Below, piece after piece: positions 572 through 55,573 of a stretch of 64,000 bases of DNA. The DNA is taken from the IMG/VR virus record IMGVR_UViG_3300010430_000003, positions 124,001-188,000 of that record; one strand, given 5' to 3'. Under the pieces are notes generated by a model, which saw only the letters and a list, made by a program, of their open reading frames with translations, searched no databases and was not told the DNA's origin. The translations under genes were made by a program, and so were the position numbers. Each line of letters begins with the position of its first letter. Position 1 is the first letter of the stretch.

Positions 572-805
572 ATGATGGAAGAAAAAAACAAAAGAGATCT
601 TAAGAGAATTAGAGAAAAAGCTCTTAGAGATAGAGAAGTAGAAAAGGGTGTGCATGATGGGCGTATGTATACCAAAGTCCATAAAGTCAGAAAAGACAAG
701 AACATTAACTATGAAGACGAAATGGATGAGTATTTTTGGGAAGAAGAGGAAATAGAAGAGCCTTCCGACGAAGAAGAAATTGAAGCATCACCTTGGAGAC
801 GATAA
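572..805 (+). CDS. hypothetical protein, basic N-half and acidic C-half
   Basis: 77-aa ORF in the + strand gene chain. Confidence 0.5.
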   Translation: MMEEKNKRDLKRIREKALRDREVEKGVHDGRMYTKVHKVRKDKNINYEDEMDEYFWEEEEIEEPSDEEEIEASPWRR

Positions 806-1008
806 TGGATTCGTATATTAATATATTGATTCATTATCGTTTTTATGGAGACCTCCCAATGATACCTGAATTGCTGTATCAAAACTTTGAAATGGAACAA
901 TATTCATCATCTATGTCTTCCTTTAATGAAAGCGAATATAAAGAAGACAACATATATTATGATTATGATCTTAACGGTTTAACTACATTACTGGAGACCA
1001 ATGCCTAG
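805..1008 (+). CDS. MNIN-family small protein
   Basis: MDSYINILIHYRF N-terminus; overlaps the next gene. Confidence 0.5.
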   Translation: MDSYINILIHYRFYGDLPMIPELLYQNFEMEQYSSSMSSFNESEYKEDNIYYDYDLNGLTTLLETNA

Positions 1009-1582
1009 TCATTCATTTTGGTACACTGATACCAATGTTATTAAGAAAATATATGAGGTTTTTAACTATATTACTATCGATCCAACAACCTCCCCGGAAG
1101 CCAACAAGCGTGTCCGTGCTGAGTTCGTTTACACGATCGATGACTCATGCCTGACGACCCCGAAATGGCTTCCTGACGCCCCTGACGGCGCTGTGACGTG
1201 CTATATGAACCCCCCTTATTCTAAGGACTGTGATGGTACAAAACCCTATGTGGTTAAGCTATTAGAACAGCTAGATAAAGGTGTTGTTAACGCAGCTATC
1301 GTGCTTGTTAATTCATCTACTTCTTCAAGCTGGTTCCAGCTTTTAATGAAAAACAGTGAGCTTGTTTGTTTTCCATCAAAAAGGTTGTGTTTTGATGAAG
1401 ACCTTGATTACGTCAAGAAATATGTTGATCCCGAAGAGCCAGGGCATGGGCTAAAGACTGGCAAAGCTCCGAGATATGATAATGCTGTTTTTCTCTTAAT
1501 AAGTGACAGTTCATACAGTCATTATGCAGAGAACTTTATTGATTCTTTCTCCTCAATGGGTAGTGTATTAAAATTGGTATGA
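1001..1582 (+). CDS. phage DNA N6-adenine methyltransferase (Dam-like)
   Basis: IDP..S..AN N-terminal motif, catalytic NPPY, ST.SSWFQ.L segment typical of phage Dam family. Confidence 0.85.
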   Translation: MPSHSFWYTDTNVIKKIYEVFNYITIDPTTSPEANKRVRAEFVYTIDDSCLTTPKWLPDAPDGAVTCYMNPPYSKDCDGTKPYVVKLLEQLDKGVVNAAIVLVNSSTSSSWFQLLMKNSELVCFPSKRLCFDEDLDYVKKYVDPEEPGHGLKTGKAPRYDNAVFLLISDSSYSHYAENFIDSFSSMGSVLKLV

Positions 1583-1966
1583 ACTCTTCTACTATAAATA
1601 AATGGGTTGTAGAACGGTATGCTTCGTCATACACTTTTTGGCATGGCGCTATAATTGAAACAAACAAATTCACAAGTAGGGGCACTCGCACGAAAATTCG
1701 ATTTATTCAGATAGATGGAGAGTTGCGATATAAAGTTCTGAAGGCGTGGCTATCTTTATACAATCTTGTTGATGATAAATACAGAGATTAATAGATTAAT
1801 AGTAGATAATTTGATTTGTGAATTATCAGGTTCGTGGAAAGTGTATGGATTTTGTAAATATAGTCGATTAACTTACACACAAATATTGGAGATACCATAC
1901 CCATACGTTATTATACATATTGGCAACATGAGAGAACTATATGAAAGACATGCTCATAACCGGTAG
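1579..1966 (+). CDS. two MNIN-family small proteins (1579-1791, ~1772-1966)
   Basis: [14 protein letters not shown] and [15 protein letters not shown]-termini; overlapping starts and stops. Confidence 0.5.
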
Positions 1967-3700: not shown

Positions 3701-3965
3701 CCCTGCACCTCCCCCAACACCCCCTGATAAGAATGAATTTTGGAAACAAATCGCAGTCAGTCTTGGATTAAGTGTTGTTTCTACCGCACTCACCCAGATG
3801 ACACAAATTGCTATCTCTGAAATTTATGGTAAGTATCGTGGTAGAGGACAAAGGATGGAAGAGGAACTTCCTCAACCCCCACAGCAATGTAATTGTTCTC
3901 AGTATCAGGAAGATGATACGGAAGAGATGACAAGGGAAGAAATTGACTCAATTATTTCCTCTTAA
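3648..3965 (+). CDS. hypothetical protein with Pro-rich segment and one hydrophobic helix
   Basis: 105-aa ORF preceded by AAGGGAGA. Confidence 0.5.
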   Translation: MFVPTGKILTPLTRKTDNPAPPPTPPDKNEFWKQIAVSLGLSVVSTALTQMTQIAISEIYGKYRGRGQRMEEELPQPPQQCNCSQYQEDDTEEMTREEIDSIISS

Positions 3966-4533
3966 TGTCACCATTGCTTTTAAGTTTCTTATTAATGCTG
4001 TCCCTGAAGTCTACTCTGCCAATAATCAGTTATCAGATTATTGGTTGGATAAGAGAACTTTACTCATGGAATTGGAAGATCGCAAGATAGGATATAATTC
4101 TATTATTAATTTAATAGTTAACGGGCCAAATTCTTTATTAAGACGATTTAATGAATTTAAATGAACTCATTCGTGCTGATTTCTTGTGGGAAGTAGATTA
4201 CTCTATTATTCTTAATAAGGAACTCAAAAAAACAGTCTCGACGTCTGAAGGGTTTGTCTGGTTTTTACGCATATGGCAAACACAAACGTTAAATCACGTT
4301 ACCTTTATTAAGGGGAAGTTATTATCATTAACTTAATAATGGCCGCTGAATACATGTATAGCGTTTCTAATCTTAGAGATAGAGATGAAAACTTTATAAA
4401 GGGAACCTTCTCTTACATAAGAGGAGGAGAACAACAAGAATTGGCTTCTGAATTGACAGATTTGGCCGCTTCTTGGCTGGATTATATCGCAGAAACTGAA
4501 GATTCTAGTTTGTTTTTCTCGGCCTCTCCTTAA
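3943..4533 (+). CDS. three MNIN-family small proteins (3943-4164, 4151-4336, ~4321/4339-4533)
   Basis: LNVTIAFKF, MNLNELIRADF and (I)INLIMAAEY N-terminal motifs. Confidence 0.45.
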
Positions 4534-4543
4534 AAAATTACTG

Positions 4544-4571
4544 TTGTTTTTTTGTCCAAAATAAATATAAT
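4544..4571 (+). promoter_or_regulatory. sigma70-like promoter
   Basis: TTGTTT-N16-TATAAT in the intergenic gap, 6 nt before the ATG at 4578. Confidence 0.55.
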
Positions 4572-4577
4572 TAAATT

Positions 4578-5282
4578 ATGAAGAGTTTTGTTTGTATAAG
4601 CGACACTCACTCAAAGCATAGAGAGTTAGAAATGCCATTTGGCAATGTTCTATTGCATTCTGGTGATATCTCATATGCTCGTAAGGGTGACTTGTTGGAA
4701 GAGAGAAAACAGCTTATTGATTTCTCTGAATGGCTTGGGGAACTTCCCTATGACCATATTGTTGTGATTGCTGGCAATCACGATTTCCTCTTTGAGAAAG
4801 AAGAAGAGGAAGCGGTGGAGATCTTAACGCAACATAATCCCAATGTTCATTATCTAAATCAAACATCAATCACAATTGATGATATTAAGATTTATGGTGA
4901 GCCAAGACAGCCTGAGTTTTATAACTGGGCGTTTAATGTCTCAAGAAACAGTATGAAGCATGTATGGGATATGGTTCCCGATGATGTTGATATTATTGTT
5001 ACTCATGGTCCTCCGCATGGTTATGGAGATGTTGTTGAAAACAACGCAAGCATGGATATCTTTTCAAATCACAATCAATTTGAAAGAGTGGGTTGCAAAC
5101 ATGCTAGGAGACTTATTGATTCAAGAATAGAACACCCTTTAAAGCTTGTAACCTTTGGGCATATTCATGAGGGATATGGTCAGTGGTATAAGCCCCAAGC
5201 AGGAACACACTTGGTAAACGCATCAGTTGTTAATCGTCGTTATAATGTTGTTAATAAACCAGTTGTAATTGAAATTGATTAA
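4578..5282 (+). CDS. calcineurin-like metallophosphoesterase (MPPED-like)
   Basis: SDTH, HSGD, AGNHD, THGPP and FGHIHE motifs. Confidence 0.92.
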   Translation: MKSFVCISDTHSKHRELEMPFGNVLLHSGDISYARKGDLLEERKQLIDFSEWLGELPYDHIVVIAGNHDFLFEKEEEEAVEILTQHNPNVHYLNQTSITIDDIKIYGEPRQPEFYNWAFNVSRNSMKHVWDMVPDDVDIIVTHGPPHGYGDVVENNASMDIFSNHNQFERVGCKHARRLIDSRIEHPLKLVTFGHIHEGYGQWYKPQAGTHLVNASVVNRRYNVVNKPVVIEID

Positions 5283-5484
5283 TCTAATCATAGCTGAAAC
5301 TCTTATTAATAACATTCTCTGGTTTGAGAGGGATTGGCTCGCCTGCGACCATTTCTGGTATTGGGATAGTACTCGCGACAATGATGGTGATGGAGACTAT
5401 TACACTTCTCGGCGCTATTCACCATTGGAAGATTCAATAGACTGTGCAAGACATTGTTTGCATAATGTGGCACTTATTTATTAA
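5269..5484 (+). CDS. MNIN-family small protein
   Basis: MKLINLIIAETL. Confidence 0.55.
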   Translation: MKLINLIIAETLINNILWFERDWLACDHFWYWDSTRDNDGDGDYYTSRRYSPLEDSIDCARHCLHNVALIY

Positions 5485-5490
5485 GAGTGT

Positions 5491-5565
5491 GCTCCTATAG
5501 CTCAAAGCGGTGAGAGCACTTGCCTTATAAGCGAGAGGTTTCGGGTTCGACCCCCGATGGGAGTA
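5491..5565 (+). tRNA. tRNA-Ile (UAU)
   Basis: acceptor GCTCCTA/TGGGAGT, anticodon arm CTTGC-CTTATAA-GCGAG, T-loop GGTTCGACCC; no encoded CCA. Confidence 0.85.
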
Positions 5566-5585
5566 TTGTAAAATTAAGGAATAAT

Positions 5586-5846
5586 ATGAATATTAATTTA
5601 ACAATGGCATGGAAGGTCTTTATAAGCAAGGGGCTTAATTGGAGTTATGTTGATGCTTCAAGCTCTTTGATTTATTATCTTGAACGTAGTGTTGAATATA
5701 AAAAAGATTTTGATCTCTATGTCGGACAACATAATAAATTATTAAAAGACCTTGATGGGTGGAATAGGTCACAGTTTGATCATGCTATGGAATATAGACA
5801 CAACCCGTCTATCTTTAGATTTTGGACATTCAAGGGAGAACAATGA
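5586..5846 (+). CDS. MNIN-family small protein
   Basis: MNINLTMAWKVF starting just after the tRNA; AAGGA upstream. Confidence 0.6.
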   Translation: MNINLTMAWKVFISKGLNWSYVDASSSLIYYLERSVEYKKDFDLYVGQHNKLLKDLDGWNRSQFDHAMEYRHNPSIFRFWTFKGEQ

Positions 5847-6721
5847 AAATCAAAGTAGCGAAGGAACTATTTGTTGGTATTCGCAACAGTGATGCTGTTG
5901 GTTGGGCAGTCGGGTATAACAATACCACTAAGAAGGGAAAGGCGGACCAAGATAAAGTTGAAAGATGGTGTGGCAAAGGGATGACAAAAGTCATTGTCAA
6001 TGAACCAATTGATGGCTTTGAAATTGATAAGAGTGTTTCTCGCTATTCAACCTCCAATAAGGTGTGGAGGATTAAAGATCCTCGCGGCTTTATTCTTGAA
6101 ATCTCAACTTCCAATATGGAAATGTTGTTGAACAACTGTACTATGGAAAATGGAGTAGTTAAAGGGAAGTGTGTTTGGGGTGTCTCAAACAAGATGGCAC
6201 TCCTTCCAGAAAGCCACCCTGAGTTTGACAATATTGTCAACGAACAATCAACAACATCAAAGTTCCTTACACCTAGCAAGCTCAAAAGCGGGATGATTCT
6301 CCGTAAGAATACTGGGGAGAAGATTCAGTATATCGGAAAAGTTTGTTACTATGGAGTAACTGCCACAACTAGAGCAAGCGGCGGAAGAAATAAGTGGGGT
6401 GGCATTGGTTATAATTGGCATATTAAGAGTATTAATAAGAGCCCTGCAATAGTTCACCTATACAAGTTTATTAAAGAAGATTCAAGGCTAGAAACCTATG
6501 GCTTTCAAAAGACTTTGAAAGCACATTTAATTGAGGAAGGCAAAGAGGTAGAGTTTACACAAGAAGAACTTGACAATGCACATAAAACCCGCCGCATATA
6601 TTGCAATGGAAACTTTAGAGAGTATCGTTTCTTTTTGAGGAAAGAAGAAACTGAATTTACTCACGATGATAAAAAGGCATTCACTCCATCGGGTGAAGAA
6701 ATTTATGAGGTTACAAGATGA
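5843..6721 (+). CDS. conserved hypothetical phage protein
   Basis: ~292 aa; TSNKVWRIKDPRGFILEISTSN motif resembles large-phage hypothetical proteins; GGAG RBS. Confidence 0.7.
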   Translation: MKIKVAKELFVGIRNSDAVGWAVGYNNTTKKGKADQDKVERWCGKGMTKVIVNEPIDGFEIDKSVSRYSTSNKVWRIKDPRGFILEISTSNMEMLLNNCTMENGVVKGKCVWGVSNKMALLPESHPEFDNIVNEQSTTSKFLTPSKLKSGMILRKNTGEKIQYIGKVCYYGVTATTRASGGRNKWGGIGYNWHIKSINKSPAIVHLYKFIKEDSRLETYGFQKTLKAHLIEEGKEVEFTQEELDNAHKTRRIYCNGNFREYRFFLRKEETEFTHDDKKAFTPSGEEIYEVTR

Positions 6722-6930
6722 CTGGTCAAGAGATTGCTCATATCATGAGTAAAATGATCTTGTGGAAATATCAGAAAGATATCTTTTATCCACACATGAC
6801 GGGGGTGCAATGCAGCGGGGGCCCCGAGCACCGAATGTCTTTTAATGATAGGGTTAGAATAAACAAGAAGAGTTGGGTTCGTTGGTACCAAGAAGAATTG
6901 GGTTCGTTGGTGGCATAGATTCTCCTTTAT

Positions 6931-7002
6931 GCGCCTATAGCTCAATGGAGAGAGCACGGGATTTCTAATCCCATGATCTAGGTTCGATTCCTAGTAGGCG
7001 TT
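6931..7002 (+). tRNA. tRNA-Arg (UCU)
   Basis: acceptor GCGCCTA/TAGGCGT, anticodon loop TTTCTAA, T-arm CTAGGTTCGATTCCTAG. Confidence 0.85.
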
Positions 7003-7084
7003 TGATTAAACAGTGTTAGAGCTTAATTTAGTACTAATCACTATGATGAATTACAGGTTCGAATCCGGGTATAACGAGGATTGC

Positions 7085-7551
7085 ATGAATACCAATAATC
7101 TCATTAGGAAGTTTATTCTGCTTAGTACTTATTATACGCACCTGCGCCGGCATCGGTCGCCTTGCGTGGGTCTTCCAAGTCGTGAAAACGTTTTCGAGGT
7201 TCAAGCGACTAGAGGGCGGAGTCTTTATCTTTTTATGCAATGGACAAAATACCAAGAAAAACCCTCGGAAAACTCTGGTGATTTAGGTTTCGCAGAAAAT
7301 ATTTGTTTTGCAACCATACAAGACTTCCGGCGGCATCAGAAGTGAATCAAGATATTAATAATGTTGTTTACAAACAGTACTTGATAAGCGGATATTTATT
7401 TTGTAATGCTAAATTTTATGGAACTCTGTACAAATATCTTTCTCCATTAGATAGAGTTTCTTGGTTAACCCTTGATGAGTGGGCACATGAGGTAAAATTA
7501 TCAAGGATTATTAAAAACATGCCTGTATGGAAGAATGGTAAATATGTCTAA
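7085..7551 (+). CDS. two MNIN-family small proteins (7085-7345, 7342-7551)
   Basis: MNTNNLIRKFIL and (V)NQDINNVVYKQY; GTGA overlap. Confidence 0.5.
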
Positions 7552-7950
7552 TCAACGGAGGTACCTATTACCAGCTTAAGGCTGGCTAACAAGAATACTA
7601 ATAATAAATGGAATGTATGTGCAGTTTGTTTTGCGGGCTCAAGAGTTCTTGCTTTTGGCTTTAATAAACCCAAAACTGAAGCATCCATTCTTTATCATGC
7701 AGAAAACATTAATTCAATGTATGAGAGTTCCAAAACAGATTATGTTTCTCATTGTCGCCATGCCGAAGTTGATGCTATCAAAAAGGTAAGTGATGTAACA
7801 AAGATAGAGTGCATTGTTATTGTTCGTAAGACTAAAGATGGCACTCCGTCAATGGCAAGACCATGTAACATTTGTCAACAGGTGATAGAAGAAGCGGGAA
7901 TAGACAATGTTTATTACTCGGATGAGGAAGGTAAGTTAAGGAGGTTTTAA
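7544..7950 (+). CDS. CMP/dCMP-type zinc deaminase, apparent frameshift near the 5' end
   Basis: HAEVDAI and ARPCNIC motifs; in-frame upstream CAVCFAGSRVLAFGFN; ATG at 7544 is out of frame by one base at ~7575. Confidence 0.75.
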
Positions 7951-8153
7951 TGAATCTATTAATTTCTAGGAAAATTCTTGATGCTTATGGTAGAGAATAT
8001 ATATTCTTTGGAGATGATGATTTTACTCCCATGTCTGCCTCTGATAGATGGTTAAAAGCAACTCTTAGAATGAGATGGAAATATTGGTCTTCGACTCGTT
8101 GCTCAAGAACTCTTAAAGCTGAATTTAGTTATTTAACCTTCAAAATTAATTAA
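7950..8153 (+). CDS. MNIN-family small protein
   Basis: MNLLISRKIL; TAATG overlap. Confidence 0.5.
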   Translation: MNLLISRKILDAYGREYIFFGDDDFTPMSASDRWLKATLRMRWKYWSSTRCSRTLKAEFSYLTFKIN

Positions 8154-8251
8154 TAATAGGAAGAAAACGACTTGCAACCCCGTTATATAGGGTGACAATT
8201 CGCCGGTGTCAAGTGGGGCACCACCACATTACCATCATTGGAGATCAGAAA

Positions 8252-9736
8252 ATGCCAGTGTGGAGCAAAGAACAAGAAGAAATCTTTTCGTTTTTCGAAA
8301 CGATTCACGAGCAATCCCAAGACCTCGTTATCGAGGCATATGCAGGGTGTGCTAAAACAACAACAGCCATTCAGGCCATTAAGCACTACCATGCAAAGTA
8401 TCCCAAAAAACGAATACTCATGGCTGCATTCAATAAGAAGAATGCAGATGAGCTTACTGAAAAAATCAATGCTCTTGGCATTGAATGGAAACAGGCTCAT
8501 GCAAAGACACTGAATAGTGTTGGGCTTGCCTGTCACCGAAAGAACAGCAAGGGCAAAATTAATGTCGAGCCCCGAAAGGGTCGAATAATTGCAAAAGCCC
8601 TTGCTGATGCATACAATGGCACACGGGGCGAAGACGATCAAATTTCCGGTCTTGCTGGGAAGGTTCGTCGTCTTGTTGAATTGGCTAAGGCCACTTTAAC
8701 TTGGTCTAACAACGACTATGAAATGCGCTCTTTGTGTTGGGAACACATGATTAGTTGTGATGTGGATGAGGTTAATGTAGTTATTGATCTTGCCCGGAAA
8801 GCTATGGATGAATCAACATATGATCCCTTCAATGTTGACTTCACTGATATGATTTGGTTCCCATACCGATTCAAGCAGTGGCCTTGGCAATATGACTTGG
8901 TCATTATTGATGAGGCACAGGACCAGAACGCCGCAATGCTTTCTCTTGCTCAAAAGAGCAAAAAGCGAAACGGCAAACTTGTCATCATTGGAGATAGGCA
9001 CCAAGCAATTTATGGTTGGCGCGGTGCTGATTCTGAATTCATGCAACGAGCAACTGAGGAAATGGGAGCTAAGGTTCTCACGCTCTCCCAGACCTTTCGG
9101 TGTGGCAAGGCAATTGTTGCTGAAGTCGCAGAAGAGCATAAATTGGTTCCCGGCTTTACTGCTCACAAGGATAACTGTGAGGGGCTTGTTCGCCATGAAC
9201 GAATAGATACAATGATTGAGGAAGCTGTAGCAGGAGATTTCATTATCTCTCGCAAGAATGCTGACCTTATGCAACTCTGCATTGAGTTTCTTAAGGATGG
9301 TCGGGCAGCTACTATTCAAGGTCGCGATATCATGGGAGCCCTTATCGGAATTATCAATGATTCCGAAGCTGTTACCACTCCTGAGTTCCTGTCATGGTTG
9401 GAAGATTATAGGGTAGTTGAGGCACAAAAGCTGGAACTTCTTGATGCGGAGGAAAAACAAATCGATGCACATTATGATCGATGCGAATGTCTCCGCGTTC
9501 TCTCTGTTGAATGTGATACAACGCAGTGCTTGATTGATAAGCTTGAAGAGCTTTTCAGTGATGATGATGATGAGAACAAAATTGTTCTTACCACTGCTCA
9601 TCGCTCGAAAGGTTTGGAGCGAGATAGGGTGTGGTTGCTTATTGATTCTTTCCGCGCTGATCGTGGAGGACAAGAGGCAAACTGTCTCTATGTGGCAATT
9701 ACTCGTGCAAAGGAAGAGGTGGTTTATGTCGGTTAA
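8252..9736 (+). CDS. UvrD/Rep-like superfamily 1 helicase
   Basis: Q motif SKEQ, AYAGCAKTT, IIDEAQD, GDRHQAIYGWRGA, TFRC, TAHRSKGLE and YVAITRAK. Confidence 0.93.
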   Translation: MPVWSKEQEEIFSFFETIHEQSQDLVIEAYAGCAKTTTAIQAIKHYHAKYPKKRILMAAFNKKNADELTEKINALGIEWKQAHAKTLNSVGLACHRKNSKGKINVEPRKGRIIAKALADAYNGTRGEDDQISGLAGKVRRLVELAKATLTWSNNDYEMRSLCWEHMISCDVDEVNVVIDLARKAMDESTYDPFNVDFTDMIWFPYRFKQWPWQYDLVIIDEAQDQNAAMLSLAQKSKKRNGKLVIIGDRHQAIYGWRGADSEFMQRATEEMGAKVLTLSQTFRCGKAIVAEVAEEHKLVPGFTAHKDNCEGLVRHERIDTMIEEAVAGDFIISRKNADLMQLCIEFLKDGRAATIQGRDIMGALIGIINDSEAVTTPEFLSWLEDYRVVEAQKLELLDAEEKQIDAHYDRCECLRVLSVECDTTQCLIDKLEELFSDDDDENKIVLTTAHRSKGLERDRVWLLIDSFRADRGGQEANCLYVAITRAKEEVVYVG

Positions 9737-9808
9737 CATAAACCTCAAAGGCTTTCTCAAGAAAGTTAAGTCTCGGCAGGTAAGACACGAAATCAAACGC
9801 GCTATTAG

Positions 9809-10159
9809 GTGGAATCCTTAGTAAGTATGAGTCTTAAAAGCGCAATATGGAGAGTCATTAGAAAACGCATGCATATAAATAGGAAACATTCATTACCCAA
9901 CTTGATACAATCATATAAATTTTTAATAAAGGGGGGAAGACTAGGAAACGTTGGGGGAGAGATTCATATTTTTAATGGCTTGGAAGATATCAACCGCCGA
10001 ATTGCTTGCAGGTTTCTCTCAAGAGTGTTGTTCTCTGTTAAAGAACCTGATGGATCTTGCTATTCTAGTTTTCATCAAGAATATGGTCTTTGGGAAAGTG
10101 GGTCCGTACACTCTCTTTATCTAATGAAGAAAGTCTATCTTGCGCAATCAAATAACTGA
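9809..10159 (+). CDS. hypothetical protein
   Basis: 116-aa ORF in the operon; contains an internal DINRRIACRF resembling the MNIN motif. Confidence 0.4.
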   Translation: MESLVSMSLKSAIWRVIRKRMHINRKHSLPNLIQSYKFLIKGGRLGNVGGEIHIFNGLEDINRRIACRFLSRVLFSVKEPDGSCYSSFHQEYGLWESGSVHSLYLMKKVYLAQSNN

Positions 10160-10165
10160 TAAACA

Positions 10166-10238
10166 GGATCTCTAGCTTAAGTGGTAGAGCTACTGGCTCA
10201 TAACCGGTAAGGTCTCGGTTCAAACCCGAGGAGATCCA
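10166..10238 (+). tRNA. tRNA with CAU anticodon (elongator Met or Ile2)
   Basis: acceptor GGATCTC/GAGATCC, ACTGG-CTCATAA-CCGGT, T-arm CTCGGTTCAAACCCGAG. Confidence 0.88.
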
Positions 10239-10257
10239 TAGGAAATAAGAGAATAGT

Positions 10258-17566: not shown

Positions 17567-17568
17567 TT

Positions 17569-45606: not shown

Positions 45607-45612
45607 TAAAAT

Positions 45613-48600
45613 ATGGGTGGTCTCGCTGGTCGTATCAAATATCTTTATGAAGGTGATTTAACCTTCAAAGAACTTAAAACTATTCTTGAAAATATTTCAT
45701 TAAGTCACCTTCCTCTTTATGAAAAAGTGGATGGATTTAATTGCTATTTTTCTTGCAGAAGAGGTATGCCTGTAATGGCTCGAAATCTGACCGAAGCACG
45801 GTCAGGTGGTTTATCCATCATTGAACTATCAAATCGAGAATTTAAAGGTGGCAAGAAAGTAAAGAAGGTTTTTATTGAAGCCCTCAAAAATTTCTCCAAA
45901 GATTTCAGACTCTTAGATAAGAAAATTTTTGAAAGCGATGGGAATCAAGTTTTTTATAATTTTGAAATCGTTGACAAAAATACGAATCGTTTGTTTGAAT
46001 ATGATAGTAACGGTCTTGTCTTGCACAACTCTGGTCATTTCTGCATTGTTGAAAATAATAAACATTTTGTCAATGGCGATGGTTTTAGAACAGGAACTAT
46101 CGGAACCAAATATATTAAGCATAATTTCAAAACCTCTCTTAGAGAAAATTCATATTTTGATGGAAGTTCATTCATACAAAGAATTGATGAAGTAATGCAA
46201 TCAGTTGGATTGTCTGAACTCAATTCAATTTCAGAATTGAAAGAGCAAGAGAGACTCAAAAAGATTCTTAATGAGTTTTCTAATAATTTAATAAACTCTC
46301 TTAAAAGTAATTTTGTTGACAGTCAAGAAGAAAAAGTAACTCAATTCAAAGATCGAGTCAAAGAAGCTGTTGATTGTCTCCTTGAATATTCAGGTCCAAA
46401 TCGAGCACAGGTCGTTGAAAAAACTATTCATTATTTAAATCAATTCCCTGCCATTGACTCAATCAACTCATGCATTGAAGGGGTTGTTTTTGAACATAAT
46501 GGCGAAATGTATAAAATGACTGGTTATTATAGACCAATAAATCAACTTTATGGCTTTTATCAAAAGACGCTAAAGGAATTCGATTCAGGTCGAATGTATC
46601 CCATTGAGCCAAGCTCTTATAATGTTGACGGTGTTTTGACACATCCTCAAGAAAAAACCATTGCAATCTTTCCTGGAAGTTTTAAACCGCCTCATGCGGG
46701 ACATTATCGAATCATTGAGGAATTGAAAAAACTCAAAACTCCTGATGGTTTTCATATTTGTAATAAGATAATCATTTTAATTTCTAATAAGGCTAGAATG
46801 GCTCAATCTGATTCGAAAACGACATATGTCACCGCTGAGATTGCTAAGGAGCTTTGGGATCTCTATGTGTCAAATGAAGATGCTCAAACTCGAATTGAAG
46901 TCCGAGTTGCAGATCACGACACTCCAATTAAGTGTGTTTATGATATCATGCTTAATGAAATGTCTCCCGGCGAAACTTTGATGTTGGTCAAATCAGATAA
47001 AGACGCAAATTCAGATCGATTTAATGCTTTTTCAGATTTCTCGGATGAATATGACCTCGGTGTTAAGGTTATTGCAAAAGAAATGAATATCTTCTCTGCG
47101 GGAATTTCAGCTTCAAATATGCGAAACTGGATTGCTGATGGAGATGAGGATAGGTTCAAGGGCTTCCTCCCAGATCACTTATCGTCAGAAGACCGCGCTC
47201 GTGGTTGGGAAATTGTTACCGGCGAACAAGACGTTTCGTTATCGGAAGACGACTCTTTTTTTTTAAGTGAAGGGTATGACGCTCTTCTTGAAGGAGAAGG
47301 TGATAAACGTCTAAAGAGTGCCCTCCGGAAGAACCCAGATTATAAAGAACAAATTGAAGCTCTTGCTGCAGCTGATCCTTCCGGCAAAGGAAGGAAGCTT
47401 TTGCCTTGGATGGTTCGTGAGCTTGTGAAGTTTGATGGCGGGCGAACAAATGATATTATTGCTGTGATATCATTGTTTTGGCAATATCGGCAACGCTTTA
47501 AAGCAGCTTCCTATTCAACCGATGTTTTTTCATATTCCTTTGAAGAAATGTTGACTCTCCTTAAGAAATTAAGACTCACTCCTCGTTTTGATAAAATTAA
47601 GTCTCCTCTTCGAACATCCAATTATCCCGGTTCTTCTGTTGTGTATGAGGAAGAAGACTTTGCTGTGATCCGACCATATACCTTTGAAGCTTCATGCTAT
47701 TTTGGAGAAGAGGGAAATTGGTGCATCTCCACTGATGAGGGTCATTGGAATGACTATGTCGGAAATGAATCTGTTCATTATATCTTAATTAATGATTCAA
47801 TTAAATTTGAAGAAGATGCTGATTCAAAAATTGATTTTGTTGTAAGACATGGTACAGTCATGGAGCTGTGGGATAAAGAAAATACTTCTCTTGATGAAGA
47901 TTATGTGGAAGAGCTTCTTGGAGAAGAACTCTATAACAAAATTGAACAAGCAATTTTAACAGATTATGAACGTGATCCTGATAATGAAGAAACAGGTAAT
48001 CGCAAAGAGTGGATTGAACTTCAATCTGAAATCGAAGCTGATTGGGATGATCGAAAATATATCACATGTGAGATATATGAATATGATTCGAATCAATTCC
48101 AGCTTCAAGCTTGGATTAATATTGACTTCGATGAAACGAATATAAAATTAAAACCGCAAGAACGCTCTTGGCAAGCGTCTCAAAAATTTTCTCATGCAAT
48201 TGAAGCAATTATTGATTATACAATCGAAGATGTTGAAGTTGATGGGAATACAATTCGTGGTAGAATATACCTTGATGATGTATTTACCCCTGATGACGCA
48301 CAATATAGTTGGGAGCAATTAACAGAAAAAGATGATTATCTTCAAGGTGATGATCCCGATGACAACATTCGAGCCGTTGTTTATTCACTGTGGGAATATG
48401 ATTTAATTGAAGGTGAAACAGAAAGTAAAATAGAAATCATCAAAAAGATTGATGAGCATGAGTTCAGATATCTTTTCGCCGATTTTGATGAAGATGAAGG
48501 GTTATCGGTTCAATTTACTCTCCACGATTTAATGCTTCCCATTTTTCCAGAACAATATGTTGTTTACGAAGATAAAGGGGTGGATTCAATGCGTCCAAAT

Positions 48601-51444
48601 CTTAGTACACAAAGTTTTCAAAATAGAGCAATTCGAAGGCAAACTTTCGAAGGTGCAGACATTAAAATGCACACTCAAGATTTCTTTAAAAAGTTTGGAA
48701 TTCCCACTTCTCTTGTAACAGCATCAGAACATGAAGTTATTCTTGGAGAAAAAGCTTATGGAATTGTTAATAAGAATTTAGAAATGGAAACGTTTGCTAT
48801 TAGAGATAATTCTGGTGTTGAAAACTATAGAGATGTCGATGAAAAAGTAAGTTCTGTTGTTAAACAGGCCGGGAAGGATCCTGATTTCTTAGATGGTGGA
48901 ATAATTGTTGAATATTTCTCGAAGGATGGGAAACTTGTAAATTCTGTTCATTGCTTGATTAAATTCTATCTTTGGATTGGAATAGCAGATCTTTTATATA
49001 TTGATGATGATGACATGGCTGGCTTATTGGAAAAGCTTATTGAATTAGATTCAAGCGGTAAAATTGAAGATTTCCGAAACCAAATTAAAGATCTCATGCT
49101 CGGTAAAAGAAAGTCAATTATGCAAAACGATCTCGGAAAGATTAAAGATAATATAGGCAGGAAGTTTATCAATAAATATTATCTATCTAACTTTTCCGTA
49201 ACAGAATCCTTTACTGATCAAATTCTCGAAAAATGTGGTCCTGATAAAACTGTGATTGTTTGGAATTCTCCTAGATCCCAAAACACAGATCGATATTTCC
49301 TTGAGGCAAAGCTTGAAGCTATGAATAGGGGGATTGATACGTCTGGACTATATTACGCTCCAGTTAATGAACTGTTCATGACCGAACATGGATTGATAGA
49401 AGAAGAGATTAACGGTGGCTCTTCTGATCAGTTTGCTGTTGTTCCAAAGATGAATACAAAGGCTCATTGGTATTTTAATAATTTAAAATCAGAAAATCAA
49501 TTGGCTTCTCATTCATTGGGACAGTTTCATCTGTTAATGGAAAATCGGGTTGATTTCTTGCAAAAGACATATCGTGAGAAAATCTTCAATAAACTGATCA
49601 ATAGTCTTTCAACACTCTATATGGCAGAAATAGACCACTTAAATTGGAAGTGGCTTGGACCTCACATTGTTGCCGCTTATAATAAGGTAATGGAAGACCC
49701 AGCCGTCGGGAAAGAATTCCTTTCAAGTATTGAAGAAGACGACATTGAAAGACTTAAAGACCAAGCATTTGAATTCTTTATTGAAACTGATCCTTCTAAA
49801 AAGAAAAAGTTTAGCCAATGGTTGATCTTTAAGTTCATTAAAGATGACGAACGCATTGAAGATATCTGGAGTTCGGCGGGTGATCTTGAGCTTTTCGAAC
49901 AGCTTGTTGAACGAAGAATTATTATAGGTGTTGATATCAACAAACTTTCATTAAAAGAACTTAAGGAAATTGTTGATGAACATGAAGGTCAGTTATCTGC
50001 TCGACAGAAGGCTGGTAAAGGAAATGAAAAAGAGCAAATCATCAAGAATGAAATGGACGTTCTCTTTCAAGAGGGTGAATATGTGATGGCTCTCCCAAAA
50101 ACACAAAGAGCTTCATGTCTTCTTGGTACAGAAACACATTGGTGCACCGCTTCTCGTGGTGATCGCAACATGTTCGACATGTATTACGAAGACGGCCCGT
50201 TGATTGTGTTTATTACTCCTGCCGGAAAGTGGCAGCTTCACATTGAATCAAAACAATTTATGGATAAGAATGATTCTCCTATTGATTTATTACCTTGGAT
50301 TGATTCCAATGAAATTTTCAAGGAACCATTTTTGAAATTCTTGCTCGATAATGAATGGGATAAAAAGCTCGATCAAACCGATATATATAGCCAATATTTT
50401 TCAAATTCGGGAATGTTGAGAGATCTCTCCATTTTTATATTCCAAGAAACATTAACAGAAGAAAAAGCATTGGATATCATTGAGAAAGGCTCCCGACCAA
50501 AGAATGCTACTCACGTTGATTTTGGAACCAAAAACTCATTTGGTGGGGAAATCAAGAATAAAATGTTATTCGATATCTTATGGAATTCAGAACATAAGAA
50601 GTGGTGGAAGCTTAAGAGACGTTGGGTTAGAAAACTTGTAGAAGCTTATGAAAATGGGGTCGTTCCCGTGGGTCAAATAAGAAAAGATATGGTGAATAAC
50701 TTTATCAATCTAATGCCTCCCAACGATTTCAAAGAAATCTTCATGCCAACTTTTATAAGTGAAAATTATCCAACATCCAGAGAGATGTTTTTGAAAACAA
50801 TTGCTATTGATGCGCTCGGTTTGAAAATTGGATTCAATACAGAGAAAGGAGCACAGAATTTTCTAACAATCCTCGAAAGAATAATTAAAAATGAGGGTGA
50901 GTCTAATCTTGCATGGAAATCATATCAAAATTCCATCGAACCAAAAGGTTGGGTGTTAGAGATGCTTAAAAGACCAAATCTTAAAGAATGGTATTCTCAA
51001 AAATTTGAAGAATTAGATTATGCTCAAAGAACCGCCGTAGCCTTCGATATGCTTAAAACAGGTAAGAAAAACAATGATCAAATGTCAGGCTCCTCAAATG
51101 TTGAATTCGTTGACGATAACTCCCCAATTACCAAGTTCTTCATTCCAAGACTCAAAAAAGGAATTTCGGGATCAAAAAAATATAATGACTTCCCAAAATT
51201 GGGAGGTTATTTATCGCAATGGGAAGAGATTAACAAACTTGATCCAGAGATTACCGATATTTGGGTTGATACATTCTTAAATGCAGTGGAAAATGGAAAG
51301 GATAGTGATTCAAAAGAAAGGCAAATGTCATGGATGTACGGTAACATTACTGATAAACATGGGAATCCTATTAGATATGGACCACCTCAATTCAAACAGT
51401 TGATTGAACCATTGAAAAAAGCACTTGGGCGAGATCATGATTGA
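45613..51444 (+). CDS. 1943-aa multidomain protein: ligase-like (EKxDG) domain, HIGH nucleotidyltransferase domain, two repeated DPS..W / ASC..G...WC modules
   Basis: EKVDG...EGVVF...YKMTG; FPGSFKPPHAGH...ISASNMR; ASCYFGEEGNWCIS and ASCLLGTETHWCTAS. Confidence 0.75.
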   Translation: MGGLAGRIKYLYEGDLTFKELKTILENISLSHLPLYEKVDGFNCYFSCRRGMPVMARNLTEARSGGLSIIELSNREFKGGKKVKKVFIEALKNFSKDFRLLDKKIFESDGNQVFYNFEIVDKNTNRLFEYDSNGLVLHNSGHFCIVENNKHFVNGDGFRTGTIGTKYIKHNFKTSLRENSYFDGSSFIQRIDEVMQSVGLSELNSISELKEQERLKKILNEFSNNLINSLKSNFVDSQEEKVTQFKDRVKEAVDCLLEYSGPNRAQVVEKTIHYLNQFPAIDSINSCIEGVVFEHNGEMYKMTGYYRPINQLYGFYQKTLKEFDSGRMYPIEPSSYNVDGVLTHPQEKTIAIFPGSFKPPHAGHYRIIEELKKLKTPDGFHICNKIIILISNKARMAQSDSKTTYVTAEIAKELWDLYVSNEDAQTRIEVRVADHDTPIKCVYDIMLNEMSPGETLMLVKSDKDANSDRFNAFSDFSDEYDLGVKVIAKEMNIFSAGISASNMRNWIADGDEDRFKGFLPDHLSSEDRARGWEIVTGEQDVSLSEDDSFFLSEGYDALLEGEGDKRLKSALRKNPDYKEQIEALAAADPSGKGRKLLPWMVRELVKFDGGRTNDIIAVISLFWQYRQRFKAASYSTDVFSYSFEEMLTLLKKLRLTPRFDKIKSPLRTSNYPGSSVVYEEEDFAVIRPYTFEASCYFGEEGNWCISTDEGHWNDYVGNESVHYILINDSIKFEEDADSKIDFVVRHGTVMELWDKENTSLDEDYVEELLGEELYNKIEQAILTDYERDPDNEETGNRKEWIELQSEIEADWDDRKYITCEIYEYDSNQFQLQAWINIDFDETNIKLKPQERSWQASQKFSHAIEAIIDYTIEDVEVDGNTIRGRIYLDDVFTPDDAQYSWEQLTEKDDYLQGDDPDDNIRAVVYSLWEYDLIEGETESKIEIIKKIDEHEFRYLFADFDEDEGLSVQFTLHDLMLPIFPEQYVVYEDKGVDSMRPNLSTQSFQNRAIRRQTFEGADIKMHTQDFFKKFGIPTSLVTASEHEVILGEKAYGIVNKNLEMETFAIRDNSGVENYRDVDEKVSSVVKQAGKDPDFLDGGIIVEYFSKDGKLVNSVHCLIKFYLWIGIADLLYIDDDDMAGLLEKLIELDSSGKIEDFRNQIKDLMLGKRKSIMQNDLGKIKDNIGRKFINKYYLSNFSVTESFTDQILEKCGPDKTVIVWNSPRSQNTDRYFLEAKLEAMNRGIDTSGLYYAPVNELFMTEHGLIEEEINGGSSDQFAVVPKMNTKAHWYFNNLKSENQLASHSLGQFHLLMENRVDFLQKTYREKIFNKLINSLSTLYMAEIDHLNWKWLGPHIVAAYNKVMEDPAVGKEFLSSIEEDDIERLKDQAFEFFIETDPSKKKKFSQWLIFKFIKDDERIEDIWSSAGDLELFEQLVERRIIIGVDINKLSLKELKEIVDEHEGQLSARQKAGKGNEKEQIIKNEMDVLFQEGEYVMALPKTQRASCLLGTETHWCTASRGDRNMFDMYYEDGPLIVFITPAGKWQLHIESKQFMDKNDSPIDLLPWIDSNEIFKEPFLKFLLDNEWDKKLDQTDIYSQYFSNSGMLRDLSIFIFQETLTEEKALDIIEKGSRPKNATHVDFGTKNSFGGEIKNKMLFDILWNSEHKKWWKLKRRWVRKLVEAYENGVVPVGQIRKDMVNNFINLMPPNDFKEIFMPTFISENYPTSREMFLKTIAIDALGLKIGFNTEKGAQNFLTILERIIKNEGESNLAWKSYQNSIEPKGWVLEMLKRPNLKEWYSQKFEELDYAQRTAVAFDMLKTGKKNNDQMSGSSNVEFVDDNSPITKFFIPRLKKGISGSKKYNDFPKLGGYLSQWEEINKLDPEITDIWVDTFLNAVENGKDSDSKERQMSWMYGNITDKHGNPIRYGPPQFKQLIEPLKKALGRDHD

Positions 51445-53902
51445 TTTAAAAGAAATAGAGCTAGCGCTCGAAAAGTATTATGATAAAGAAACAACTTTAG
51501 AGAACAATCTCTCTTCTTTTTATGAAAATTTGAGAGAAAATCCGAAGTTTTATTCTTATTCTGTCGCGAGAGAACAAAAAAGAGACCAATTATGCCCTGT
51601 GCGTGATCAAAATGACTGGCTTAGAGAGGAATTCACTCACAGTTCCCCCAATAGCTATTCAGAAGCCATAGAAACCACTGTAAGGTCATTAAAAGAGATT
51701 TTGGAGGCACTCTTCCTTGCCTCGCAAGAAGACTTTAGAGTGGATTCTGTTCGGTCTGACATAATGCGTAATCTTTCGATAATTTTAAAGACAGTTTTGC
51801 GGTCAGCGAAGCTCCAAAATACTGCAAATGACCCTGATATCGTAAATATTGCGAAAAAGCTGCTCAAAATGTCTGATGAACGTATCGGCACCCTTGAGTC
51901 TTATGAGCCAGAGATGCCAGAACTTTTTTATGACACCGCAAAACTCGTATATCAAACAATATATGTGTTAACTGCAGAGATAATCAATAACCCAACTGAT
52001 TCTAATGTTTTTGATTCTCGAAACTTATCAAAGATGCTTGATAAACTTGCAACGGCTGTTCGCCATGGATTTTATGAAGAGGCCTTCAGTGAATTCAGTG
52101 AAGGAAGGAATATTCTTAATCCCCAACCAGAAATCTCTCCAACTTTGATTGACAAAGCAATTAAATACGAGAAAGACCGTTCGCGAACCACAGATATGGA
52201 AGGTCTTTATAATATTGTGCTTGCAAACCTTGAAGAAGACCCCGATCATTATAATTTTCTTTTGAAGGGCAATCTTGATGAAATGTCTTCAATGGGAGGT
52301 GGTGCAGTTGCCGGCGCCATGGGTGTGGGTTTCGATCCCGATCCAAAAAAAAAGAAAAGATATGAAAAGTCTTTAATTGGTGAAAATAAAAAGAAGCTTG
52401 GGCAATTTTCTGATTGGTTGAAGACTCCTTTTTTTGGGGGCACTATTTTTTCTGATAATCTCCTTCGACGGCCCGAGGAGTGGGTTGCTGTTCATCCTGA
52501 TGGGGATCATTTTGTTGATTATCAAGATAACGAAGTTAAAATAACAGATGAAAAGTTAAGCATAGTTAGACCTTGGATGTTAGATCCTTCAAAATCCCGA
52601 GAAAATTGGGATCCTCATGGTGTTTGGTCAGAATGGCTATCTGATTATGAAATTATTTATAATGATAAAATTAATAAATTTGAGATTATTGAAAATCTTA
52701 AAAATATAAAAGCAAATATTGAAAACTTAAGAGCAATTTTTTTCATTAATGAGGAAGACTACAATTTATATTCTAATATACTCAAACCGAATGAATCTCT
52801 TCCAAAAGAAGTTTGGGACTCATGTTTGATTGAACCATACGCTATGAATTATTCAGGTTATCTTGAACGAGATTTTATGCTTGATGGGATTGGGAAAGAA
52901 AGTAATGATATCTATTCTTCAAAAAAGTATTCGGTGGAGCCATGGGCAGAAAAGCATGGTTTGGGCTCTGTTGCTCAATCACATATGTTAACACAAGTTT
53001 ATTGTAAAGGAGAAATGACAGACTTAAAAAGAGAGTTATGTAAAAAACTTATTAATTTAAAACAAACTCTAAATAAAAATTTATCAGAACAACAAGAACA
53101 TGATTTGAAAATCTTTGAAGATTATGAAGACTATTTTCGAAATATCCATAAAGAGATTTCAGGAGAAGGAAAGGCTCCCGCAAAATTCTGGAAAGACCCG
53201 TTTTGGGTGGGGGCGGTGTTCAGCAATTCAAATGGCGATGAATTTATGCTCGAACCAGAATTTGATTTCATCAACATAAATTATGACACCATTGAAGTGC
53301 CTGATGATGAGATTTTGGAAATCAATCCATATCTTAACATCGATAATAAATATAGCGAAATTCGGTCAGATTATGAAATCACAATGGTCAACACTTTTGT
53401 TCACTATGGAGGTTCAGGATATTCCATCTTTCATAATGGTCAGGAAAGATACTTAAAAAGCTGGCATGGGGCATATGAGTATTTCATGAATGACAACGAA
53501 GAATATCATCATGATACCCACCCAGCCAAAATGTATTATATGACCCCCTCTTTTGATTTGAGCGAGCTTCAAGATCATGAATGGTTCAATCATGGAAAGA
53601 GTGTTTGTTTGGTTGATTTTCATCATGAAACTGAAATTTGGTTTTATTTAACAAAAGACAAGTTCATTGATTATCTAATAGATTATAATTCAACTAATAA
53701 AAGAATCTCTTATTATGTCCCGAATGGCACAATAGTAGGTGGGTTGAGAGTGAGATATGATAAATCAGGAATTCCTGATGGAATCTTCAAAGGAAACAAA
53801 AAACATAAAGTTCCATTAAATGTCTATGTTGAAAAACATGGACCCGTTCCGCAATATAGTGATCTCAAACAAATCGTGAACAAATACTTTTATAGAAAGT
53901 AA
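51437..53902 (+). CDS. large acidic hypothetical protein, putative virion component
   Basis: ~820 aa; contains LDEMSSMGGGAVAG linker typical of jumbo-phage head proteins. Confidence 0.7.
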   Translation: MIDLKEIELALEKYYDKETTLENNLSSFYENLRENPKFYSYSVAREQKRDQLCPVRDQNDWLREEFTHSSPNSYSEAIETTVRSLKEILEALFLASQEDFRVDSVRSDIMRNLSIILKTVLRSAKLQNTANDPDIVNIAKKLLKMSDERIGTLESYEPEMPELFYDTAKLVYQTIYVLTAEIINNPTDSNVFDSRNLSKMLDKLATAVRHGFYEEAFSEFSEGRNILNPQPEISPTLIDKAIKYEKDRSRTTDMEGLYNIVLANLEEDPDHYNFLLKGNLDEMSSMGGGAVAGAMGVGFDPDPKKKKRYEKSLIGENKKKLGQFSDWLKTPFFGGTIFSDNLLRRPEEWVAVHPDGDHFVDYQDNEVKITDEKLSIVRPWMLDPSKSRENWDPHGVWSEWLSDYEIIYNDKINKFEIIENLKNIKANIENLRAIFFINEEDYNLYSNILKPNESLPKEVWDSCLIEPYAMNYSGYLERDFMLDGIGKESNDIYSSKKYSVEPWAEKHGLGSVAQSHMLTQVYCKGEMTDLKRELCKKLINLKQTLNKNLSEQQEHDLKIFEDYEDYFRNIHKEISGEGKAPAKFWKDPFWVGAVFSNSNGDEFMLEPEFDFININYDTIEVPDDEILEINPYLNIDNKYSEIRSDYEITMVNTFVHYGGSGYSIFHNGQERYLKSWHGAYEYFMNDNEEYHHDTHPAKMYYMTPSFDLSELQDHEWFNHGKSVCLVDFHHETEIWFYLTKDKFIDYLIDYNSTNKRISYYVPNGTIVGGLRVRYDKSGIPDGIFKGNKKHKVPLNVYVEKHGPVPQYSDLKQIVNKYFYRK

Positions 53903-53930
53903 TTATAGCATAACAACTGGGTTAAAACAA

Positions 53931-54752
53931 ATGATCGATAGAGAAAAACTTTTAACAGAAATCAAATTCAGAAAATTCGTTCGAGATCTTCTTGAAGAAA
54001 AAGATAAGAAGGAATCTTTCAAAGAAAAAATGCAAGAAGAGGTGAGGTTTCGAAACTTTGTTCGGCAAGTTTTAACAAAAGAACGAGACACCCAAAAACT
54101 CACTGAAGCGAAGACCAAAATCATTCCTTATGATTCCACTGGCATTGCCATTCTTGCAGATGTGATCAAAAAAGTTATCCCAATTATTAAAGATGATTAT
54201 TTCTCTCTGACCACAGATATCAAACAAAGAAAATCATTTCGTGCACACATTGTGAATGCTGTTCGAAATTCCCTCGCTCCAATTAGGAACATCCAAGGGT
54301 ATCCAGTTGATAACAGTGGTGGAGATGGACAATTGCTATCAGCACCAGATATGGTTTCTTCGCCGCATCATCATTATGCTCAATCCGGAAATGGTGCAAA
54401 TGGACCACATGATACTGGATCAGTCAATGAACAGACCGATCTTGAAGACGTTGATCAAGATGGAATCGCTGATAAGGATGATCGGTATATCGATACCGAT
54501 GATAAGCCGGCAAAAAAAGTTAAATCCTCTGATGAGGAGGATACTTTCTCTCTTCCGGGTGAAGATGGAACAGGCAGAAACCTTGCCCTCTTAACTTATC
54601 GACGAATTGAAAAGGTTATTATTGACGGATATCAAACTCTTGATCGCAGAGAAGATCAAGAGGATTTCTACGACTATATTGTGGCAAACTTAAAGATCTA
54701 TTTTGATCGGTGGGAAGAGGAACTTCAAAAGGAATTATCAGAACGGTATTAA
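53931..54752 (+). CDS. hypothetical late protein
   Basis: 273 aa; duplicated E..FR.FVR..L motif; TGRN.A...Y; FYDY.V.NLK.YFDRWE. Confidence 0.7.
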   Translation: MIDREKLLTEIKFRKFVRDLLEEKDKKESFKEKMQEEVRFRNFVRQVLTKERDTQKLTEAKTKIIPYDSTGIAILADVIKKVIPIIKDDYFSLTTDIKQRKSFRAHIVNAVRNSLAPIRNIQGYPVDNSGGDGQLLSAPDMVSSPHHHYAQSGNGANGPHDTGSVNEQTDLEDVDQDGIADKDDRYIDTDDKPAKKVKSSDEEDTFSLPGEDGTGRNLALLTYRRIEKVIIDGYQTLDRREDQEDFYDYIVANLKIYFDRWEEELQKELSERY

Positions 54753-55573
54753 GACAATTTTACTGATCTGTTAAATGTTCTCCGTAATCCAAATATTAGT
54801 TCGTAATGGGTATAGTTGGCGTGGAAAAAACTACATTTCCAACTATGAACCGATATGTTCGTCGACAGTTTATCTGATTTAGCATGTATCATTATACAAT
54901 TACTAATCAATAAATTGATAAATTGATTATCATTAGGATCAATTACATATCCTCTAATTTTGGTCTTCAAATGATAATGGTACATGGTATTTAACGAAGC
55001 ATTGAATTCCAAAGCAGTTCAAATTCTTCAACAAGAAGATCAACAATTCGTGAAATTTCATCAGGAAGGGAAGCTCCCGGTGTGATTATCAAGTCTATAT
55101 CATAGACTTCAAAAGTACGCTCATATAAATCTTTCATCCCGCTCCTCTTTTAATTTCTCTTAAATCCAAAAGACACACCCACAAAAGAAAATTCTCTATA
55201 CAATATTCTCCAAAAACAATCAATTCTTCATGTTCGTAAGATTCTATCACAGATTGTTTGGGGTCTATTTCCCATATTTTGGGGTTATTAATATCAACAG
55301 TGAAGTTTTGATTATATTGAAGAACAAAACTAGCCTTCACCATTTTATTAACAAATGAATTCATTTATGTTCATTGGAGAATGATAAGTAGTAGTAGTTT
55401 ACATCTTCTATACATCCAGAAATAACATGTTTTGAATATTCAAGTATAGATGCCATACTTGAATATAGCGCTACGGAATAGTGCTTTCCTGGTATGGACG
55501 TCCATAAGAACCGACCATGTTGACGAACAAAGCCAGCTTTAATCAGATTATTTATTGTTGAATGTGAATTCAT
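54749..55573 (-). CDS. three MNIN-family ORFs (54749-~54960, 55134-55364, 55361-55573)
   Basis: FINLLISNC, VNKMVKASFV, INNLIKAGFV. Confidence 0.55.

Follow-up and report, generated by a model that had tools for sequence, protein, structure and literature searches.

Within a stretch of 64,000 nucleotides (nt), hereafter the window, which comprises bases 124001-188000 of a 210,326-bp metagenomic contig (Joint Genome Institute, JGI, 3300010430 Ga0118733_100000259, equivalent to IMGVR_UViG_3300010430_000003) and has a GC content of 36.5%, we found a large family of small protein-coding genes whose products share an N-terminal element of ~11 residues. We estimate that the window contains ~60-65 true members of 54-139 amino acids (aa), which account for ~45% of its ~135 genes and one fifth of its bases; in a region of 45 kb, nearly half of the genes belong to this family. 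Members were located at 0.8-2 kb, 5-10.5 kb, 16-18 kb, 19339-24462, 27.9-41.7 kb and, beside a tRNA gene, 55 kb, and a few further members were present elsewhere on the contig, outside the window. Judged from its gene content, the contig looks like a jumbo phage (see below).

The shared element was characterized in 95 members, the set that also underlies the leader and hydrophobicity counts given below. It begins with a hydrophobic residue (Ile in 65 of the 95), followed by an invariant Asn, two mostly hydrophobic residues, Ile or Val, and Ala (64 of the 95, otherwise a small residue); then come two free positions, an aromatic or aliphatic residue, an aliphatic residue, a further free position and a polar position. 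The element is usually preceded by zero to nine polar residues. In one member of 118 aa (24527-24883), however, the motif is internal, at about residue 36, and an orthologue in a related phage (locus L141) has the same layout. Thus, a free N-terminus is not required.

The strict pattern M-x(0-7)-I-N-x-x-[ILVM]-[AGSCV] occurred in 31 ATG-initiated open reading frames (ORFs) of at least 40 aa in the window, compared with expectations of 0.41 (maximum 3) in 100 second-order Markov sequences and 0.85 (maximum 4) when the residues of these ORFs were shuffled (200 times). The motif, which an earlier note on this DNA had described from the letters alone, is therefore far above chance. A short hidden Markov model (HMM) of the motif added members with GTG or TTG starts, or with the first ATG further upstream. 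A looser pattern that included GTG and TTG starts returned 72 candidates on the locally coding strand versus 7 in antisense or out-of-block positions; this asymmetry was taken as the false-positive level, and the family size was set accordingly. The number of copies first proposed (~70) was thus slightly too high, whereas the family itself is real. Chance or non-coding ORFs were ruled out by the strand asymmetry, by the open frames kept in orthologues and by codon-position identity patterns.

The five ORFs that the earlier note had quoted as examples all lie where it had placed them, the orientation of members was always that of the adjacent genes, and a scan with the loose pattern agreed that members are absent from 43.9-54.7 kb and 56-64 kb. 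On the other hand, members are not confined to groups of one to five between ordinary genes, as had been thought: the largest block consists of 26 back-to-back members (19339-24462), and this array had been missing from the list of regions altogether.

Several observations bear on the level at which the element is constrained. When 35 members were aligned on the motif, the codons for the conserved Ile, Asn, Ile/Val and Ala carried much information at their first two positions and little at the third; upstream of the starts aligned in this way, only a faint purine-rich patch was conserved. The choice among synonymous codons for the conserved I, N, I and A followed genome usage (p = 0.30, 0.16, 0.03 and 0.87, respectively), and the direct repeats reported by a repeat finder were gene starts, with 64-87% identity and a spacing of one gene length. 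Therefore, the constraint is on the peptide, not on the DNA. This bears out the previous suggestion of protein-level constraint, which had been drawn from synonymous variation: that variation is real, with a three-base period and degenerate third positions that follow genome codon usage. A non-coding tandem DNA repeat or a regulatory site was rejected because conservation tracks codon positions 1-2 only and the synonymous usage is that of the genome.

The genes of the 26-member array are tightly packed. Almost all of its junctions overlap (24 of 25), 20 by 4, 8 or 11 nt and the remaining four by 4-56 nt. The common start sequence carries stop codons in both other frames, so that the stop of the upstream gene usually falls 4, 8 or 11 nt into its successor, and a Shine-Dalgarno core was present at only five of the 26 starts. 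The overlapping junctions, together with the scarcity of Shine-Dalgarno cores, point to translational coupling in the array. Recoded stop codons or pieces of larger genes were ruled out, since neighbouring members lie in different frames with start-stop overlaps. The same overlaps, stops and missing Shine-Dalgarno cores would suit an element that acts at the RNA or DNA level, either as an AU-rich unstructured start or as a device for termination of, or coupling to, the upstream ORF, with the peptide as a by-product; in addition, the codons for Asn-Ile-Asn-Ile form a perfect 12-bp palindrome when all of them end in T. We regard such a device as very improbable, because third positions vary freely at genome usage (the Ala codon takes all four third bases), a wide range of codons specifies the hydrophobic residues at +7 and +8, and the distance of the motif from the start is 0-9 codons, which often places it clear of the junction. 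Nor can translational coupling explain the motif, which is often several codons downstream of the start.

Codon and amino acid composition was also distinctive. The annotated frame had the best codon score in 41 of 47 members. GC content at codon position 1 (GC1) was 0.34 in members and 0.48 in long genes, a deficit that reflects depletion of GNN codons (D, E, G, A and V), and there were real excesses of Tyr, His, Arg and Trp; the median isoelectric point (pI) was 9.2 in members versus 5.6. Thus, the aromatic and basic composition remarked on previously holds for Tyr, His, Arg and Trp, whereas a wider enrichment in Y, H, R, C, M, I and N is largely GNN depletion. With regard to codon usage, ATA, AGA, TTA and ATG were 1.5-3 times commoner per 1000 codons in members than in long genes, and the five tRNAs encoded in the window are those that read these codons; each of their genes was followed by a member or candidate member within 0-83 nt. 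The pairing of tRNA-Leu with a member was also observed in a related phage (L141 2858-2942). The match between tRNAs and codons supports real translation of the family, and the tRNA set may serve it, but this is suggestive only, as phages often carry tRNAs for AT-rich rare codons anyway. The match also points to a concrete reason why this phage should carry tRNAs. Taken at the sequence level, the members look like coding, translated and selected genes.

Comparison with relatives allowed us to follow the evolution of the family. Relatives that carry it were found via the DUF7873 and sigma-factor genes: loci L126/L127 and L141/L142 represent one related phage, with ~13 and ~31 members, and L143 represents another, with ~10 members in 4 kb. 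In a related phage from Logan run SRR29270390, core proteins were 75-82% identical to those of the present phage, and many member orthologues were kept open at similar length with 35-55% identity. Orthologous pairs of members showed nonsynonymous divergence (dN) of 0.37-0.72, synonymous divergence (dS) of ~1.4-1.8 and dN/dS of 0.2-0.45 (NG86), ratios that are only rough because dS is saturated; ordinary neighbouring genes had a dN of 0.13-0.41. The member bodies thus appear to be under purifying selection, but evolve two to three times faster than their neighbours. Among 14 orthologue pairs, the ten motif positions were 58% identical and the bodies 37%. Eleven contigs of other samples were all 100% identical to the window and so offer no polymorphism for a population-level selection test.

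Turnover was evident from gene order. Of 30 members close to the sigma gene, only about eight have orthologues over their full length, in the same order, in the 31-gene array of the relative, and that array lacks any full-length equivalent of a nine-member subfamily (eight at 20.6-23 kb and one at 31.6 kb). Where the window has three tandem copies (38.2-38.8 kb), the relative has just one gene, and an extra member lies between tRNA-Leu and its conserved neighbour when the two phages are compared. The closest pair of paralogues had a dN of 0.47 and a dS of 0.61. The small number of shared orthologues, the private subfamily, the tandem copies and the changes in copy number indicate, as judged from the compared sequences, birth-and-death evolution by tandem duplication.

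Outside the element, the proteins have diverged widely. With BLAST, the 134 candidates of four loci formed 106 clusters, which comprised six sequences at most. In an hhalign comparison of nine subfamilies only the first 10-25 residues aligned, and nothing was found between them once the N-terminus had been removed; an iterative HMM search with the bodies alone could not separate real sequences from reversed or shuffled decoys. A constant N-terminal element on mutually unalignable bodies, as first described, is therefore supported by BLAST, HMM and hhalign. However, one faint signal extends further. At position +24 after the Asn, Arg or Ser was present in 38 of the 95 members, compared with an expectation of 15 and a maximum of 28 in 2000 permutations. 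AlphaFold2 was applied to one member from each of two subfamilies. It predicted for member 22012 a helix at residues 3-15, a hairpin, and helices at 29-35 and 37-56 (predicted local distance difference test, pLDDT, 71), and for member 21425 a helix at 3-15, a loop and three further helices (pLDDT 59.5, a confidence too low for fold searching). Our reading of these models is that the family may be one small fold that has diverged past sequence recognition, with its first helix nearly fixed. Hence the idea of a variable payload, in the sense of unrelated bodies, is not supported, given the register-specific Arg/Ser at +24 and the combination of helix 3-15 with C-terminal helices in both models.

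These features raise the possibility that the helix is simply the most constrained core of the fold, and that the members are ordinary fast-evolving paralogues whose N-terminus is kept for folding or stability. The C-terminal helices of both models could pack on the N-terminal helix, the weak Arg/Ser preference at +24 suggests common ancestry along the whole length, and the hydrophobic residue before the Asn would fit a helix N-cap with a hydrophobic staple. Intramolecular cores, however, normally co-diverge with their packing partners, whereas here the partner helices are unalignable between subfamilies and the N-terminal helix is nearly fixed in ~100 copies from three phages. We therefore consider a pure folding core unlikely, though it deserves to be taken seriously.

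Database searches placed the family outside known groups, as the earlier note had supposed. No family common to more than one member was found in Pfam-A, PHROGs or NCBIfam (45 members scanned), a sequence search of the PDB with members returned nothing, and Foldseek searches of the PDB and BFVD gave no significant match (best E-values 2.3 and 2.7). The profile of the best-defined subfamily, run against 1.84 billion representative proteins, recovered only the copies of the phage itself and one repetitive artefact. An exact DNA scan of IMG/VR with the back-translated motif gave single chance matches, with at most two motif ORFs per locus among the matches listed, and a word-index homologue search with one member yielded no candidate. 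The family was also absent around DUF7873 homologues (53-70% identity), at least one of which lies in a clearly bacterial neighbourhood, and around sigma homologues (23-27%). On this sequence evidence, it appears to be restricted to one phage lineage, that of three closely related phages. In addition, a literature search retrieved no described single family that supplies nearly half of the genes of a 45-kb phage region and is held together by 11 residues.

The closest resemblance is to the internal proteins of T-even phages, which are diverse small proteins that have only a capsid targeting tag in common and whose variable part counters host functions (PMC3012670). Both groups are small, often basic and mutually unrelated proteins with a short conserved N-terminal peptide, an analogy of layout and not of homology, as no homology was detectable. 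If the helix were such a tag, members would enter the prohead, be packaged together with the DNA and reach the host by ejection; their similar size and mostly basic character are as expected for DNA-packed proteins, and a 210-kb phage has room in its capsid. Nevertheless, the motif is not followed by a conserved cleavage site of the Glu type (acidic residues amount to 16% at +10 and to fractions of 0.09-0.12 nearby), and the first Asp or Glu after the Asn is scattered from +9 to beyond +20. Genes for replication and regulation, not head genes, surround the members, and the internal motif of the 118-aa member also fits poorly. T4 has three genes of this type, whereas the window holds ~60, and at least 60 different cargo species in translationally coupled arrays would be without precedent. 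A capsid tag thus seems distinctly unlikely.

Hyperplastic regions, the plastic periphery of T4-like and other large phages, are clusters of small early genes with fast turnover between core genes. Similarly, the members described here are inserted between conserved genes at syntenic sites, in numbers that differ between related phages. Those regions, however, are made up of unrelated ORFans, whereas here almost all small genes form one family with a single motif.

A short constant N-terminal element on many paralogues with a fast-diverging remainder is also typical of precursor sets of ribosomally synthesized and post-translationally modified peptides (RiPPs), such as the prochlorosins, and of pathogen effectors with N-terminal host-targeting motifs, in which these elements direct processing or export by known machinery. 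Members could by the same logic of conserved leader and variable core be exported or processed peptides, whether signal-peptide proteins, bacteriocin-like peptides with a double-glycine leader or RiPP precursors, and they are indeed small, cationic and aromatic-rich. But no Lys or Arg precedes the motif in 73 of the 95 members, the first 19 residues have a median Kyte-Doolittle value of 0.51 with none reaching 1.6, only four of the 95 contain any window of membrane hydrophobicity, and Gly-Gly occurs within residues 9-30 in just one. No modifying enzyme, C39 peptidase, transporter or other processing or export machinery was found among the proteins scanned with Pfam or annotated by JGI. The conserved part, moreover, is a helix that is predicted to stay in a folded protein of 60-80 aa. 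Export or processing is accordingly extremely improbable, and the earlier proposal of an export helix fails for want of a basic n-region, a membrane-spanning hydrophobic stretch and a cleavage motif; signal peptide, double-glycine leader and membrane anchor were excluded by the n-region, hydrophobicity and Gly-Gly counts. Every testable defining feature of T-even internal proteins, RiPP sets and effector families is absent, and the resemblance is one of layout.

The positions of members, candidates and tRNA genes are given in the following table.

Table. Family members, candidate members and tRNA genes in the window (window coordinates).
Feature	Coordinates	Strand	Remarks
Single member, 67 aa	805-1008	+	Degenerate motif (His for Ala); gene also called by JGI
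Two overlapping members	1579-1966	+	1579-1791, 1772-1966
Weak scattered candidates	3943-11550	+	3943-4164, 4151-4336, 7085-7345, 7342-7551, 7950-8153; low scores; some may be chance
Two members flanking tRNA-Ile(TAT)	5275-5846	+	5275-5484 (non-ATG start), 5586-5846
tRNA-Ile(TAT)	5490-5566	+	
tRNA-Arg(TCT)	6931-7002	+	
Two members around tRNA-Met	9980-10449	+	9980-10159 (weak, TTG start), 10258-10449
tRNA-Met(CAT)	10166-10238	+	
Weak candidate, 208 aa	10924-11550	+	Family-like start; low score; may be chance
Single member	16337-16522	+	Shortened motif (M-N-V-I-I-A)
tRNA-Leu(TAA)	17493-17567	+	
Three members	17569-18132	+	Right after tRNA-Leu(TAA); two with orthologues in L141
Unbroken 26-member array	19339-24462	+	Downstream of sigma-factor gene; holds recently expanded subfamily (20601-22987)
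118-aa protein	24527-24883	+	Motif internal
Two adjacent members	27902-28332	-	27902-28090, 28090-28332
Two members	30090-30456	-	One with GTG start
Five-member run	31054-32088	-	31054, 31256, 31431, 31612, 31867
Single member, 70 aa	32504-32716	-	
Four-member run	34475-35420	-	Beside DUF7873 gene; two with orthologues in L126
Three members	35863-36672	-	One of 139 aa, with L126 orthologue
Three tandem paralogues	38211-38834	-	One at equivalent site in related phage
Single member	39425-39652	-	L126 orthologue, 46% identity
Single member	40252-40497	-	L126 orthologue, 39% identity
Two overlapping members	41259-41679	-	
Two members	55134-55573	-	Abutting tRNA-Met
tRNA-Met(CAT)	55573-55656	-	

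Some further observations concern individual features. When read on the opposite strand, the first 30 nt of the member at 805-1008 likewise give a family-like start (ORF 709-834, minus strand), and this antisense ORF is probably an accident of the palindrome described above. In the gap between the sigma gene and the 26-gene array, a 35-codon open frame with a family-like start (19185-19292) looks like the truncated remnant of a member. A CA/CG-rich low-complexity stretch (24463-24526) directly follows the last gene of the array, and local GC is 0.45 at 24-26 kb versus 0.34-0.35 within the array. Two tRNA-like matches were found with Rfam only and were not called by ARAGORN (13408-13533, plus strand, and 33176-33244, minus strand); the former is 126 nt long and may contain an insertion or be spurious.

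With respect to the genome as a whole, the window and its flanks carry genes for a sigma-70-like factor, a UvrD-type helicase, Dam methylase, PhoH, a dehydroquinate-synthase-like enzyme with a short-chain dehydrogenase, several glycosyltransferases, a chaperonin, a DnaE-type polymerase and 5-7 tRNAs, and it was from this content that we took the contig for a jumbo phage. The flanks (L145 and L144; contig 104-124 kb and 188-197 kb) contain the DnaE-type polymerase, dUTPase, an IMP-dehydrogenase-like protein, a Cpn60 chaperonin, adenylosuccinate synthase, split transketolase-like genes and several more glycosyltransferases, a gene set that is unusually metabolic for a phage. Two regions of the window that were tried gave no nucleotide or protein match in GenBank phages. 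Contigs from at least eight other samples or assemblies were 100% identical to the window over 1-2.6 kb, and one genotype is thus widespread in that sample series.

The block at 43907-54752 had been labelled late or virion in the earlier note, a label we could not verify, because no match to a structural family was obtained for any of the proteins encoded there. A cytidylyltransferase-like segment and weak matches to PHROGs of unknown function were noted in the 1943-aa protein, and the proteins of 417, 821 and 273 aa match nothing. A trypsin-like serine protease of 260 aa (Trypsin_2, JGI annotation; ~57046-57828, minus strand, or L144 4773-5555) lies 1.5 kb from the members at 55 kb. The DUF7873 protein (33644-34384, minus strand) has more than 1300 homologues, some in plainly bacterial neighbourhoods such as an arginine-biosynthesis operon or a 350-kb contig with 62% GC, and the phage gene was probably acquired from a cell.

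The explanation that we favour, tentatively and at somewhat less than even confidence, is that the element is a shared docking or oligomerization helix attached to a variable specificity body, used in host takeover or counter-defence. The family itself is a lineage-restricted set of small and mostly basic proteins that grew by tandem duplication, with rapid birth, divergence and loss, and its genes occupy closely coupled arrays resembling operons, within the non-structural part of the 210-kb genome. The helix would serve as a common interaction module that either docks on one phage or host partner or pairs members together, the remainder (a loop or hairpin and C-terminal helices) would provide specificity, and the family may act on the host as a diversified repertoire. 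As the helix has been kept across the three phages while its packing partners within the chain changed, the constraint should come from outside the protein, and the tolerance of variable N-terminal extensions fits such an external, shared constraint. A polar Asn and a small Ala within hydrophobic stripes would also be expected of a specific helix-helix contact. The host-directed reading is favoured because fast-diverging bodies, a neighbourhood of regulatory and replication genes and flux in copy number are typical of phage proteins that engage the host.

Several points weigh against this explanation. The partner of the helix is hypothetical, and a host-directed role is suggested only by analogy with other fast-evolving small phage proteins. 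The pLDDT of the two models is only moderate or low, and the helix might just be a folding core. Codon scores and GC1 of members are far weaker than those of ordinary genes, which implies weak constraint on most body residues, and the saturation of dS blurs the estimates of selection. In addition, no convincing shared promoter motif was detected in the intergenic gaps by consensus scan and k-mer enrichment.

The most attractive reading is that of an effector library with a shared partner. In its fullest form, which we consider possible but on balance doubtful, a repertoire of more than 60 copies, probably more genome-wide, would plug into one hub through the Asn-Ala helix, and the bodies would aim this hub at different host targets. 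The hub could be a phage or host machine or other members of the family, so that the whole would constitute a combinatorial system of adaptors or effectors, which tandem duplication and loss would renew and to which the phage tRNAs would be tuned.

Even on a conservative reading, the members have diverged past recognition within one genome while 11 residues stayed fixed, which makes the family a useful case for studying the origin of small proteins and the constraint exerted by a single interaction surface. Should the helix prove to be a docking module common to the members, the family would be the first case in a phage of a large mini-protein library that renews itself on a single adaptor, and it would provide a compact natural system for viral binding diversity without a diversity-generating retroelement.

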